Positions 917-53,454 of a DNA stretch of 64,000 nt are shown here, piece by piece. The notes under the pieces are model-generated. The model searched no databases, had not been told where the DNA came from, and was given only the letters and a program-made list of their open reading frames with translations. Each line of letters starts with the position of its first letter. Positions within the stretch are counted from its first letter, which is position 1. The DNA is taken from the sequence record NC_070952.1. The stretch is one strand, 5' to 3'. The position numbers and the translations under genes were made by a program.

Positions 917-3133
917 TCACGCTGCTGTGGTTGTTGCCAGGCTGTCTTCGTTGTACGCTTCCAGCACGGAATCCATCATGTACACACCTTTACCCAGCCA
1001 CAGCTTGGTAACCGCATACATCACAGATTTAGAAGTTGGTGAATCTTCAAGGAACGAAGTCACTACTTCCCAGTTGGAGAGTACAGAACCGAAGCGATCA
1101 CGAATCAGAGCTTCTGCGTTATCTTTAACTGTTGACAGATAACCTTCTTTGCCCAGCTGAGTATCGCCAGAAACTTGGATCCACTGATCTTGCAGGATCT
1201 TCTCAACAGCCACACACTTCCACACGTTGGTCAGATCTTTCAGCACACTGTTGATGTTGTCATAAACAGTAGGCAATGCCGGACGGCAGAACTGAGATTC
1301 AGTGATTGGAGTAACAGTGATGTTACCGTTGATCAAGTTAGCTGCTGCAGGGTTGTCTGCTTCGAACTGAACAAGCGGATCGTGTGCAATACGCAGAATA
1401 CGGTTGCCTTCATGATCCGGCATTTCTGCTTTATACATACGACCATCTGAACCACCACCTGCCAGAGCAAAGGCGTACATCAGATCGATGTTCAGAGAGA
1501 AACGACCCCAGGTAGGTTCGTCGATGTAGCGCGCATTCCACAGGTTAATCGCCGCACGGCACGCGTGGGACTTATAAACGTCTGATTCTGGGATCATGTT
1601 AATACGAGTACTAAGCATGGTCGCTGTAGAATACAGCTCGTCCTGGGTTTTGGTTTTCAGATATTCAGTTGCACAAAGAACAGCAACGAAATCTTTACGC
1701 ACAGACATAAAGCTGATGATCAGGTTTTTGATCGACTGCTTATAACCAACATCCCAAAGGAAGGATACACGGTTACGAATCACATCTTTAATATCCAGAG
1801 ATGATTTGTATTCGGTCAGCCAAGCTTCGAGCAACATCTGGTTCATTTCCCAGCACTGAGCTTGAGAGATGATCGCATCTGGATCAGTGTTGTCATCAAC
1901 CCACTCACCGTTAGTATCTTCGTTCCAAGTAGATGGTTTAGCGAGATACTTGCCATCTGCGTCAGCGTACGGGTTGATCCCGCCATTAGACTGCAGATAG
2001 TGGTTCAGGCTGATACGAGTACCAGTCAGGGTGTTGGTCGCATTTGACAGTGTGAAGTTACCGCCGAACACAATACGCTGATATGGAACACCTTCGTGGT
2101 TCAACAGATCCCACATGTTCATGATCGCGTATTTCGGGAAACGTTTTGACTGGACAACTGGTGGAACCAGAGTACCGTCACCGTATTCAGCATCATACAG
2201 TTCTTTTGCTACGGCGTTTACGTTCGCGCTGTAAACATAGCTGTCGCTGAATGGTGCATCAACAGTTTCAACTTGACGGTTAACGTTGGCACCAGTATAG
2301 GAGTCAACAGCCGCTTTCAAGCTGTAACGCACGTTCGTTGAAGTCACTACATCAAACATAGTGAACGTGGTATCTGGGGTACCGTTTACGGTAGCCGCAG
2401 GAACGCGCAGACCTGCATCGGTCACGGTACCGATGTTCAGGATAAACGGATAGGCACCGTTCGCTACAATGAAGTCAGTTACCGCATCCCAGTCAGTCAG
2501 TGTGGCGTGACCAAAAGCAGCATAACTATCATTATAGAAATCACCAATCCCGGAGATCAGTTCTTTCAGTGGCCAGAACTTACCAGTGGTTCCTTCAGGA
2601 ACTTCCGGAGTGGTAGTATCAGAAGTCACTTCAAATGGTTTTGCAGTGCCGACGTCACCTTTACTTTTCAAGACAGCAGGACAAACCCACTTACCTGGAA
2701 CAGTTGGGACATCTTCATCTACAATGGCGTTACCCGCATCGTCATATTCATAATCACCGGTGAGCGTGTCACGTTTGTAATTAGGAACAGCACCGCTGAA
2801 AATAACAACACCTGCAATTACACGAGACTTAACTGTGTTATTGACCAGACGTTTAAAACCAAAAGAGGCCTGTGCTGCGGCACCCAACTTTTGAATGGCG
2901 AAAGTAATCGGATTATAATATAACCCGAATGCGTCATTGGTGTCCCCAAACTTATCAGTAAAGGTTGCCATTGACACCGTACCGTGCTTGGTATCGCCTT
3001 TAGGCGTTACTGCCGCAAAGTCCGGAAAGTGAGCAGGTGAAGAAATAACTGGTGTTGCAGAGGAGAACGTCTCTCGACTTACAATGCCGTTATTGACTAC
3101 TTTACCTGGTATCACTTTGGAAAATGTATCCAT
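917..3133 (-). CDS. Contractile tail sheath protein (phiKZ gp29-like)
   Basis: 738 aa; sheath-like C-terminal domain (ITVTPIT...RPALPTVY...VLKDLTNVW); next to tube gene and near terminase; high-expression codon usage. Confidence 0.8.
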   Translation of the reverse strand: MDTFSKVIPGKVVNNGIVSRETFSSATPVISSPAHFPDFAAVTPKGDTKHGTVSMATFTDKFGDTNDAFGLYYNPITFAIQKLGAAAQASFGFKRLVNNTVKSRVIAGVVIFSGAVPNYKRDTLTGDYEYDDAGNAIVDEDVPTVPGKWVCPAVLKSKGDVGTAKPFEVTSDTTTPEVPEGTTGKFWPLKELISGIGDFYNDSYAAFGHATLTDWDAVTDFIVANGAYPFILNIGTVTDAGLRVPAATVNGTPDTTFTMFDVVTSTNVRYSLKAAVDSYTGANVNRQVETVDAPFSDSYVYSANVNAVAKELYDAEYGDGTLVPPVVQSKRFPKYAIMNMWDLLNHEGVPYQRIVFGGNFTLSNATNTLTGTRISLNHYLQSNGGINPYADADGKYLAKPSTWNEDTNGEWVDDNTDPDAIISQAQCWEMNQMLLEAWLTEYKSSLDIKDVIRNRVSFLWDVGYKQSIKNLIISFMSVRKDFVAVLCATEYLKTKTQDELYSTATMLSTRINMIPESDVYKSHACRAAINLWNARYIDEPTWGRFSLNIDLMYAFALAGGGSDGRMYKAEMPDHEGNRILRIAHDPLVQFEADNPAAANLINGNITVTPITESQFCRPALPTVYDNINSVLKDLTNVWKCVAVEKILQDQWIQVSGDTQLGKEGYLSTVKDNAEALIRDRFGSVLSNWEVVTSFLEDSPTSKSVMYAVTKLWLGKGVYMMDSVLEAYNEDSLATTTAA

Positions 3134-52300: not shown

Positions 52301-52367
52301 TAAATGAAGCGTAACCAGGGATATCCCTGGTTACCTTTTCTTCTTTATTTTTTTTTGGAGAAAGAAG

Positions 52368-53093
52368 ATGGGAACGGTACACCAAGATGAAAATAGTCGT
52401 ATCCGAACTGTCTCGTCTCAACCTGACCAATATAAAGTTTATGGTAAAGATGATGAACGGGTCGCTAAGCTAGAATTCAGTACCAATGGTTTGACTGAGG
52501 AACATCTTCTTCTGATTCTTAAAGACCGCTTTAAGTCCGAAAAAGACCCGATAGGAAATCATATAAGAGATTGTTTGGACTCTGCACTGTTTGCAGTTAG
52601 TGCAGGTAAAATTAAAAGGGTTCCCAAGCTTATGTCAAACCACGGTTATGCTGAATTGCATGTTGATTTATCCAGCGGTACGAAACTGTATAAAGACATC
52701 ATACCGGCTGTAGGTGAAGATGCGGATCTTATTCCTGTGAATAAGTTACACGCCACCATTATGTATGATGAACGAAATCCTGATATTATCCCATCTGTAT
52801 CTAATAAGGTCTATAAAGGCAAGGTAGTAGGTGTGGAGATGTTAGGTAAGGTAGGTTCAAAATGGCGGTCTTGTGCCCTCATTCTTGAATCTGAAGGTGT
52901 GCTTGAGCGACACAAAGAACTCGTCAAGGAAGGCTTTAAGCATTCTTATGATGATCTGCTGCTCCACGTTTCCCTGGTATACGGTACTGATTCAGAGGTT
53001 GCTTATCCTGTTATCAAGCAACTCTTTGATGAAAAGAAACTACCAGAGTCAATTACCCTTTGCGCTGAAACTTGGGATCAGATAAAAGACTGA
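52368..53093 (+). CDS. acb1: Acb1-like 2H phosphodiesterase with N-terminal Tad1-like domain
   Basis: KLHATIMY and LHVSLVY HxT/HxS motifs; IPVNKLHATIMYD and ERHKELVKEGFKHSYDDLLLHVSLVY match T4 57B/Acb1; N-terminal NGLTEEHLLLILKDRFKS resembles the Tad1 core. Confidence 0.8.
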   Translation: MGTVHQDENSRIRTVSSQPDQYKVYGKDDERVAKLEFSTNGLTEEHLLLILKDRFKSEKDPIGNHIRDCLDSALFAVSAGKIKRVPKLMSNHGYAELHVDLSSGTKLYKDIIPAVGEDADLIPVNKLHATIMYDERNPDIIPSVSNKVYKGKVVGVEMLGKVGSKWRSCALILESEGVLERHKELVKEGFKHSYDDLLLHVSLVYGTDSEVAYPVIKQLFDEKKLPESITLCAETWDQIKD

Positions 53094-53183: not shown

Positions 53184-53348
53184 ATGTTTGATTTCTTTAG
53201 CTCAACTACTCCAGATGGCGTTGCATTAGTAGGTTCTTTTATCGGCGGCATCGGTGCAATGGTATTTGGTTATGCGGGTATTCGTGGAATTGTGAGTGCA
53301 GTAAAGGTACTCTTAACTCCTACACAGCAAATGGCTAAGCGTAACTAA
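53184..53348 (+). CDS. Small single-pass membrane protein (54 aa), not in ORF track
   Basis: GAGG RBS; MFDFFSSTTPDGVALVGSFIGGIGAMVFGYAGIRGIVSAVKVLLTPTQQMAKRN; own promoter and terminator (53361-53388). Confidence 0.7.
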   Translation: MFDFFSSTTPDGVALVGSFIGGIGAMVFGYAGIRGIVSAVKVLLTPTQQMAKRN

Positions 53349-53454
53349 TAAAGAAGTAAGCAGGATCTCCCTTAATTGGGAGATCCTGAATCTTTATGCA
53401 TTTATTTTTTTTGTGTTTTTATCTTTTGATTGCCTTATTAATTGGAGAAAAGAA

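Follow-up and report, generated by a model that had tools for sequence, protein, structure and literature searches.

Acb1, a phage enzyme directed against the cyclic-nucleotide signals of the host, has been described as a single-domain monomer. The sponge Tad1 consists of an N-terminal antiparallel β-sheet followed by two helices, α1 and α2 (10.1101/2023.11.15.567273), and in CbTad1 its pocket for glycocyclic ADP-ribose (gcADPR) and cyclic dinucleotides comprises F82, N92, R109, R113 and a C-terminal lid at residues 116-122 (Li et al., 10.1101/2023.11.15.567273). The β4–α1 loop of Tad1 closes on gcADPR, and R90 and T97 of CbTad1 make up the cyclic-trinucleotide site and a hexamer contact (10.1101/2023.11.15.567273). 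Fusions of two such modules are also on record: Tad2-Acb4 of Pasteurella phage Pm86 is active against both Thoeris and CBASS, the antiphage signalling system based on cyclic oligonucleotides (10.1101/2025.07.12.664507), and fusions of Sequestin (PF21825) to Tad2 or Acb4 have been described. Here we analysed a window of 64,000 nucleotides from record NC_070952.1, which is identical, in the same coordinates, to the opening 64 kb of Erwinia phage AH04 (MZ501267, genus Meadowvirus), and within it the gene AH04_67, whose product (gp67) combines a Tad1-derived N-terminal domain (N-domain) with an Acb1-type C-terminal domain (C-domain). Like the sponge–sponge fusions (Tad2-Acb4, Sequestin), gp67 holds two anti-signalling modules in one chain, each of which also exists as a separate gene; unlike those fusions, in which both partners are active binders, it joins a reduced, binder-derived module to an enzyme. 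No description of a Tad1–Acb1 fusion was found in the open-access literature searched, including that on AH04 and Meadowvirus.

We read gp67 as an Acb1-family anti-CBASS phosphodiesterase that absorbed a neighbouring tad1-like gene, with the N-domain now acting as a non-canonical accessory module, and give this reading a probability of roughly 55%. In the two-domain architecture itself and in its origin, as set out below, we have high confidence, and on this point the first-pass annotation of the window, which had proposed a Tad1-related N-terminal module joined to Acb1, was right. The protein is laid out as follows.

52368-53093, + strand: AH04_67 (gp67), the whole open reading frame (ORF), 241 aa plus stop with an ATG start; Tad1-derived N-domain, linker and Acb1-type 2H phosphodiesterase.
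52368-52601, + strand: Tad1-derived domain, residues 1-78, from AlphaFold (AF2) models, hhalign, a stand-alone hidden Markov model (HMM), Foldseek against BFVD and the ratio of nonsynonymous to synonymous substitution (dN/dS).
52602-52631, + strand: linker AGKIKRVPKL, residues 79-88, placed where the second half of Tad1 α2 (the R109/R113 region) would be.
52632-53090, + strand: Acb1-type 2H phosphodiesterase domain, residues 89-241, from phrog_755, PF23474, the family profile against 7t26, Foldseek and the predicted local distance difference test (pLDDT).

At the genomic level, the locus is orthologous to OBP_060/OBP_061 of Pseudomonas phage OBP and N1M2_39/N1M2_40 of Klebsiella phage N1M2, all lying between the RNA polymerase (RNAP) β'/phrog_3254 genes and an SbcD-like gene. 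The Acb1 parts of these pairs share 58-60% identity with AH04 and the Tad1 parts about 30%. Unlike in AH04, each pair is encoded as two proteins, and the Tad1 part is complete, with equivalents of N92, R109 and R113, the loop and the lid.

Residues 89-241 belong to Acb1, since sequence family, 2H fold and catalytic tetrad all fit. Residues 88-240 match phrog_755 (E = 1.1e-22), Pfam PF23474 is precomputed on an identical protein (P0001) and on all homologues, and two homologues of AH04_67 are named 'Anti-CBASS protein Acb1' in UniRef. The single AH04 sequence gave weak Acb1 matches in a PDB search (E = 0.14-0.36), and a 30-sequence family profile reached FBB1 Acb1 (7T26) at E = 9.3e-13, bringing the two catalytic motifs into register, and the enzyme of Burkholderia phage BCSR5 (9q2g) at E = 5.5e-8. 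In the AF2 model, pLDDT was about 89-97 over this domain, and the best five Foldseek matches in the PDB were phage Acb1-type enzymes (9q2y, 9q2g, 7t26, 7t27; E from 4e-8 to 1e-5, with 9q2y at 4.4e-8 and 7t26 at 4.3e-6), followed by cyclic phosphodiesterase (CPDase), LigT, Usb1 and a poxvirus phosphodiesterase of cyclic GMP-AMP (cGAMP). The likeness to described Acb1 proteins (T4 gp57B; FBB1, 7T26/7T27; BCSR5, 9Q2G/9Q2Y) thus extends over the fold, the HxT/HxS tetrad, the profile and a length of ~153 aa, at 13-19% identity to the solved structures, and includes the genomic role of a phage enzyme for host cyclic-nucleotide signals. The Acb1 identity that had been proposed for residues ~90-241 is therefore confirmed by phrog_755, PF23474, the profile, the structural matches and the tetrad alike. 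In FBB1 Acb1, the catalytic residues are H44, T46, H113 and T115 (Hobbs et al., PMC9117128), and the corresponding motifs of gp67 are:

52749-52757, + strand: first catalytic motif H128-A-T130 (HxT), aligned to the first HxT of FBB1 Acb1.
52965-52973, + strand: second catalytic motif H200-V-S202 (HxS), aligned to the second HxT of FBB1 Acb1.

H128, T130 and H200 are invariant in the 30-sequence alignment and S202 is nearly so. Serine in place of the second threonine of HxT is tolerated in 2H enzymes, and this substitution, together with the 88-residue N-terminal extension, is where gp67 departs from Acb1. The C-domain is probably an active Acb1-type nuclease, which by homology would most likely open the 3'-5' bonds of CBASS cyclic di- and trinucleotides in a metal-free reaction. 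Pfam and GenBank annotations recognise the Acb1 half only, the GenBank label of AH04_67 being 'phosphoesterase'.

The N-domain was detected as a Tad1 relative through intermediates. A word-index search of 5.8 billion proteins with the N-domain alone returned no candidates because the domain is too divergent, and OBP_060 was used as query instead; the single N-domain sequence had no match in the PDB, a profile of the fused proteins alone reached Tad1 there at E = 0.7, and the match to phrog_2428 was at E = 0.17. Synteny was the key, as stand-alone orthologues of the N-domain occupy the same locus in related phages. OBP_060 matches solved Tad1 (7UAV, 8KBB-8KBH) at E = 1.9e-8 over 75 ungapped residues, up to the Tad1 C-terminus, and phrog_2428 at E = 2e-21, and a profile of 26 diverse stand-alone relatives matches CmTad1 at E = 4.7e-23 and CbTad1 at E = 8e-21. 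From the other side, the AH04 N-part matches OBP_060 by BLASTP (E = 4e-11), and hhalign pairs the profile of the fused proteins with that of the stand-alone proteins at a probability of 99.0% (E = 5.3e-18, 81 columns). Run against the six-frame translation of the window (620 segments), an HMM built from stand-alone proteins only had the AH04 N-part as its sole match (E = 1.5e-8), over positions 2-67 of its 108 only, which correspond to the sheet and α1. The fused proteins have in common a set of core residues that do not vary, and the likeness to Tad1 (CbTad1 7UAV/7UAW, CmTad1 8KBB) takes in both the order of elements and the conserved core motif around the start of α1. On these alignments, residues 1 to ~80 can be taken securely as a genuine Tad1 homologue, detectable via intermediates only. 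The resemblance of the N-terminus to Tad1 had been claimed against a CbTad1 sequence that proved accurate, and the two differences pointed out at the time (the insertion that follows the 'EF' strand is missing, and the last helix diverges towards its end) both recur in our alignments.

Predicted structure agreed with this assignment in the order of its elements, though not in matches to solved Tad1 (see below). The AF2 model of the N-domain has four β-strands (residues 2-6, 11-15, 18-25 and 31-36) and two helices (44-54 and 61-78) in the same order as in Tad1, with a pLDDT of about 84 for the isolated domain. Foldseek against BFVD placed the model on the 108-aa protein G9I9V2 (template modelling score, TM, 0.77; root-mean-square deviation 1.7 Å; 27% identity), which by length and identity fits OBP_060, and on N1M2_39 (A0A6B7ZEW3; TM 0.75).

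We assessed how the two modules came to share a chain by comparing the locus across related phages. The locus consists of two ORFs in Pseudomonas phage OBP, Klebsiella phage N1M2, Serratia phage Yubaba and Shewanella phage SXP01: a Tad1-like protein of 108-150 aa and then an Acb1 of 153-156 aa in the same frame, with nothing between them but stop codons (one or two) and 0-2 sense codons. The fused form was found in AH04, Kosakonia phage Kc263 and three IMG/VR contigs, and in Pantoea phage Survivor acb1 stands alone behind a 93-nt spacer. We take the split arrangement as ancestral, since the likeness of the stand-alone proteins to Tad1 continues as far as its C-terminus. The junction of the two modules falls at a single residue:

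52632-52634, + strand: M89, the fusion junction, aligned with the acb1 start codon of OBP, N1M2, Yubaba and SXP01; about 9 codons (lid plus stop) are missing upstream.

From the α2 motif 'AL..(V/L)' to the Acb1 methionine there are 11 residues in AH04 versus 20 in N1M2, and the fusion fits a single 27-nt in-frame deletion that would have taken out the lid and the stop. The ancestor would have carried a small Tad1-family sponge gene with acb1 directly after it in the same frame, as in OBP, N1M2, Yubaba and SXP01, and in the AH04/Kc263 lineage the in-frame deletion of ~9 codons would then have joined the ORFs at the former start methionine of Acb1. On a tree of the Acb1 domain, fused versus split needs one state change (support 74/87); together with a loop deletion shared by the fused proteins, this is consistent with a single fusion in the Meadowvirus/Branisovskavirus lineage. 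A search of 1.84 billion representative proteins with the two-domain profile returned, at E ≤ 0.001, 1103 relatives, and within the top 150 of these both domains were covered by the AH04-type cluster only. When 150 representatives were inspected for further sponge families joined to Acb1, GNAT and unknown domains turned up, and no second Tad1-Acb1 type. The idea that the split genes are sequencing errors was rejected, as in-frame stops (one or two per genome) occur in four independent genomes, and separate Tad1-like and Acb1 proteins from metagenomic contigs of matching length also speak against it. At the split loci (L002 2995-3792, L004 2872-3765, L009, L010) any in-frame deletion or stop loss would fuse the ORFs.

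Given that the N-domain derives from a sponge, we asked how much of the Tad1 ligand pocket is left in it. Pocket positions were transferred through the ungapped OBP_060–CbTad1 alignment and the family alignments. The equivalents of N92, R109 and R113 and the loop glycine are invariant columns in the 26 stand-alone relatives, so the losses in gp67 are specific to the fused lineage. The first of them is a loop:

52476-52481, + strand: 9-residue deletion between F37 and S38, with the loop 'QxGxxxExG' lost, from alignments.

None of the 15 aligned fused sequences has this β4–α1 loop of 9 residues, which includes the glycine invariant in stand-alone proteins. The F82 position falls within a deletion of 4-5 residues in most fused proteins (5 in AH04), the N92 column is G63 in AH04, the R109 column is glycine in 11 of the 15 fused proteins (G80 in AH04), and R84, in the R113 column, is the only pocket residue of the four that AH04 retains. 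The R90/T97 columns are P61/D68 in AH04 and P74/E81 in OBP_060, i.e., already missing in the stand-alone form, and the N-domain would accordingly have lacked the trinucleotide-site residues from the start. The C-terminal lid was deleted at the fusion junction. The linker is modelled as non-helical, with no helix past residue 78 and a pLDDT below 50 at residues 85-88. Relative to Tad1, then, the AH04 domain is not stand-alone, is without the β4–α1 loop, the lid and the distal α2, and has lost three of the four pocket residues and those of the trinucleotide site; the F82/N92/R109/R113 pocket, loop and lid appear mostly lost. We do not expect the N-domain to work as a canonical sponge, because both mobile pocket-closing elements and most pocket residues are gone.

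These losses bear on a true bifunctional sponge-nuclease, in which the N-domain would sequester gcADPR or a cyclic oligonucleotide and thereby block Thoeris as well as CBASS, or feed the Acb1 site. The first-pass annotation had favoured such a protein, with a working Tad1-type gcADPR sponge that hands its signal to the nuclease or covers both defence systems. A gcADPR sponge of this type is not supported by the analysis of the N-domain, with the loop and lid deleted, the distal α2 replaced by a Gly/Pro linker, glycine at N92 and R109, and no solved Tad1 among the Foldseek matches; the proposed hand-over of signal and the double coverage become doubtful on the same pocket losses. What speaks for the bifunctional protein is that the N-domain is a genuine Tad1 homologue under purifying selection, that Tad1 itself binds CBASS nucleotides, and that Tad2-Acb4 of Pm86 provides a precedent for a two-module anti-signalling fusion. 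It would also draw on the pocket residues that some fused proteins retain (see below). Yet the R90/T97 columns are Pro/Asp and the pocket columns degenerate only in the fused lineage, and a tight sponge and the enzyme attached to it would compete for their common ligand. Overall, we consider a bifunctional sponge-nuclease doubtful.

The opposite possibility is that the Tad1 part is a decaying remnant, translated merely through loss of a stop codon and contributing nothing. The absence of its ligand-binding elements would suit a remnant, as would its somewhat faster evolution (proportion of nonsynonymous differences, pN, 0.10-0.22 for the N-domain versus 0.05-0.09 for the C-domain) and the fact that Survivor and similar relatives manage without it. 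However, for AH04 and three metagenomic relatives (proportion of synonymous differences, pS, about 0.4-0.6), dN/dS was 0.09-0.24 over codons 1-88, far below 1, compared with 0.06-0.11 for the Acb1 part. The single-ORF form is kept in 16 protein clusters of 53-100% identity, with the frame open and free of stops down to 53%, and the invariant core residues and confidently predicted fold also argue against decay. The low dN/dS, open frame and invariant core imply that the N-domain is maintained by selection, less tightly than the enzyme, and we regard a vestigial N-domain as quite improbable. The start of the gene is consistent with its translation:

52357-52360, + strand: GGAG Shine-Dalgarno sequence, 7 nt 5' of the ATG at 52368, seen directly in the sequence.

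Its position before the annotated ATG indicates that the N-domain is translated. A real start at M89, with the N-part as an untranslated remnant, was rejected on dN/dS, the conserved frame and the strong Shine-Dalgarno sequence at the first ATG; before M89 there is only a weak, distant AAGGG.

A Tad1-like region was also found in an unexpected place, inside a capsid. Residues ~153-227 of gp184 (PDB 8y6v chain I) of ΦKZ, like AH04 a chimallivirus, are significantly similar to Tad1-like proteins (E = 2.4e-5 for OBP_060 as query, 3.4e-15 for the family profile), and in the inner capsid vertex complex gp184 is a minor component (PMC11297242). This C-terminal region of gp184 would be compatible with a role of the N-domain as a targeting or packaging adaptor that loads the enzyme into the capsid for delivery with the genome, or positions it in the infected cell, and in GenBank 'putative structural protein' is the label on the Acb1 homologues from pEt-SU and from several pEa_SNUABM phages. 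Against this, such labels are unverified annotation, the capsid-resolved part of gp184 has been described as mainly β-strands, and the stand-alone Acb1 of relatives has no such module. We judge an adaptor function highly improbable.

The reading that we prefer, an anti-CBASS phosphodiesterase with an absorbed accessory module, accommodates both the pocket losses and the selection. The N-domain would keep the β-sheet and helix core of Tad1 and, being under purifying selection, presumably does something. As an accessory, we infer, it would most likely act by self-association, making the normally monomeric Acb1 multivalent, or by low-affinity capture of substrate. A more specific form of the idea, which we think unlikely, is that the N-domain, deprived of lid and loop, has been retuned into an open platform of lower affinity that binds nucleotides or self-associates and gathers cyclic oligonucleotides, or a Thoeris-type ADP-ribose signal, at the Acb1 site. 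If this were true, gp67 would be the first natural 'capture-and-cleave' enzyme made from a sponge and a nuclease, and would show a route from a sponge to a substrate-recruiting domain.

Several observations weigh against our preferred reading. Asparagine is kept at the N92 column in 6 of the 15 fused proteins and arginine or lysine at the R113 column in all of them, so a reduced ligand pocket may persist. The pocket mapping is a sequence alignment and not a superposition on solved Tad1, and the Tad1 pocket lies at a dimer interface, whereas the AH04 models used here are monomeric. In the Acb1-domain tree, the backbone is weak (15 of 36 branches open), and a single origin of the fusion is compatible with it and unproven. 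Lastly, when the N-domain model was compared with the PDB by Foldseek, solved Tad1 was missing from the matches, none of which was better than E = 0.4 and which amounted to noise (Pur-alpha and polo-box structures, for example). A comparison with Tad1 by HHpred and Foldseek had been proposed as a check, and of its two parts, profile-profile homology through the stand-alone proteins bears out the relationship while Foldseek lacks any match to solved Tad1. We did not take the miss as evidence of another fold, because the domain forms oligomers in Tad1 and was modelled here as a monomer, and because the models of the OBP and N1M2 orthologues fit well.

The anti-defence families from which the two halves of gp67 come are both well studied. 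The locus may serve as a 'Rosetta stone', pointing to a functional pairing of Tad1-type sponge with Acb1 nuclease among the OBP-like jumbo phages that form a nucleus, and it displays three evolutionary states side by side: the pair, the fusion and the nuclease alone. It also offers a testable case of what follows when a sponge is tethered to an enzyme for overlapping ligands, namely loss or retuning of the pocket.

The surroundings of AH04_67 place it next to the shell gene of a nucleus-forming phage. Upstream, gp64 is the nuclear shell protein (phrog_4795, E = 5e-119), from which AH04 is recognised as a nucleus-forming jumbo phage (chimallivirus), and gp65, after gp64, is the RNAP beta' subunit; the chimallivirus setting had been called correctly from the sequence. 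The gene had also been described as inserted inside this core block, which is imprecise, as acb1 is present here in every relative examined and the tad1 part alone varies, being split, fused or absent. Chimalliviruses, whose DNA is shielded by the nucleus, appear to carry dedicated counter-measures to diffusible-signal immunity beside the shell gene. PADLOC and NCBIfam returned nothing for the AH04_67 protein or its neighbours. Between the polymerase gene and AH04_67 lies one further element:

52311-52334, + strand: terminator-like hairpin and then a T-rich run, between gp66 and AH04_67, from a consensus scan.

This hairpin suggests that AH04_67 and the RNA polymerase gene may not simply share a transcript. 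A second strong palindromic hairpin, with an 11 bp stem containing 7 GC pairs, lies at 53361-53388 of the window, 3' of gp68, a small membrane-like ORF at 53184-53348; both hairpins score as terminator-like on either strand.

Many stand-alone Tad1-like proteins (L009, L010, P0036, P0038, P0044) carry an N-terminal extension of ~45 residues (ERMD..L.S......GLSREQ). Kc263 has a similar, unannotated ORF of 54 codons just 5' of the fused gene in another frame (L005 ~2800-3000), and AH04, with a spacer of 67 nt, has no sequence resembling the extension. In P0166 (284 aa) as well as in P0172 (258 aa), hmmsearch found a pair of Tad1-like domains in tandem. Among Acb1-like proteins, the domain (phrog_755) is fused to an N-terminal GNAT acetyltransferase in P0063, P0126, P0152 and P0099, and N-terminal regions of 100-240 aa without an assigned family occur in P0093, P0111, P0150, P0133, P0098 and P0057, so Acb1 seems to be a frequent fusion partner. 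Existing labels on relatives are diverse: Tad1-like ORFs are called 'ABC transporter ATPase' (N1M2_39 and SXP01, and also the molecule name of PDB 7UAV) or 'hypothetical', and Acb1 genes 'RNA ligase', 'RNA 2',3'-cyclic phosphodiesterase' or 'putative structural protein' (pEt-SU, pEa_SNUABM_47/50/12), which is likely annotation carry-over. The practical gain from our analysis is modest in this respect, and consists in the re-annotation of the Tad1-like 'ABC transporter ATPase' ORFs and the Acb1 'RNA ligase' genes.

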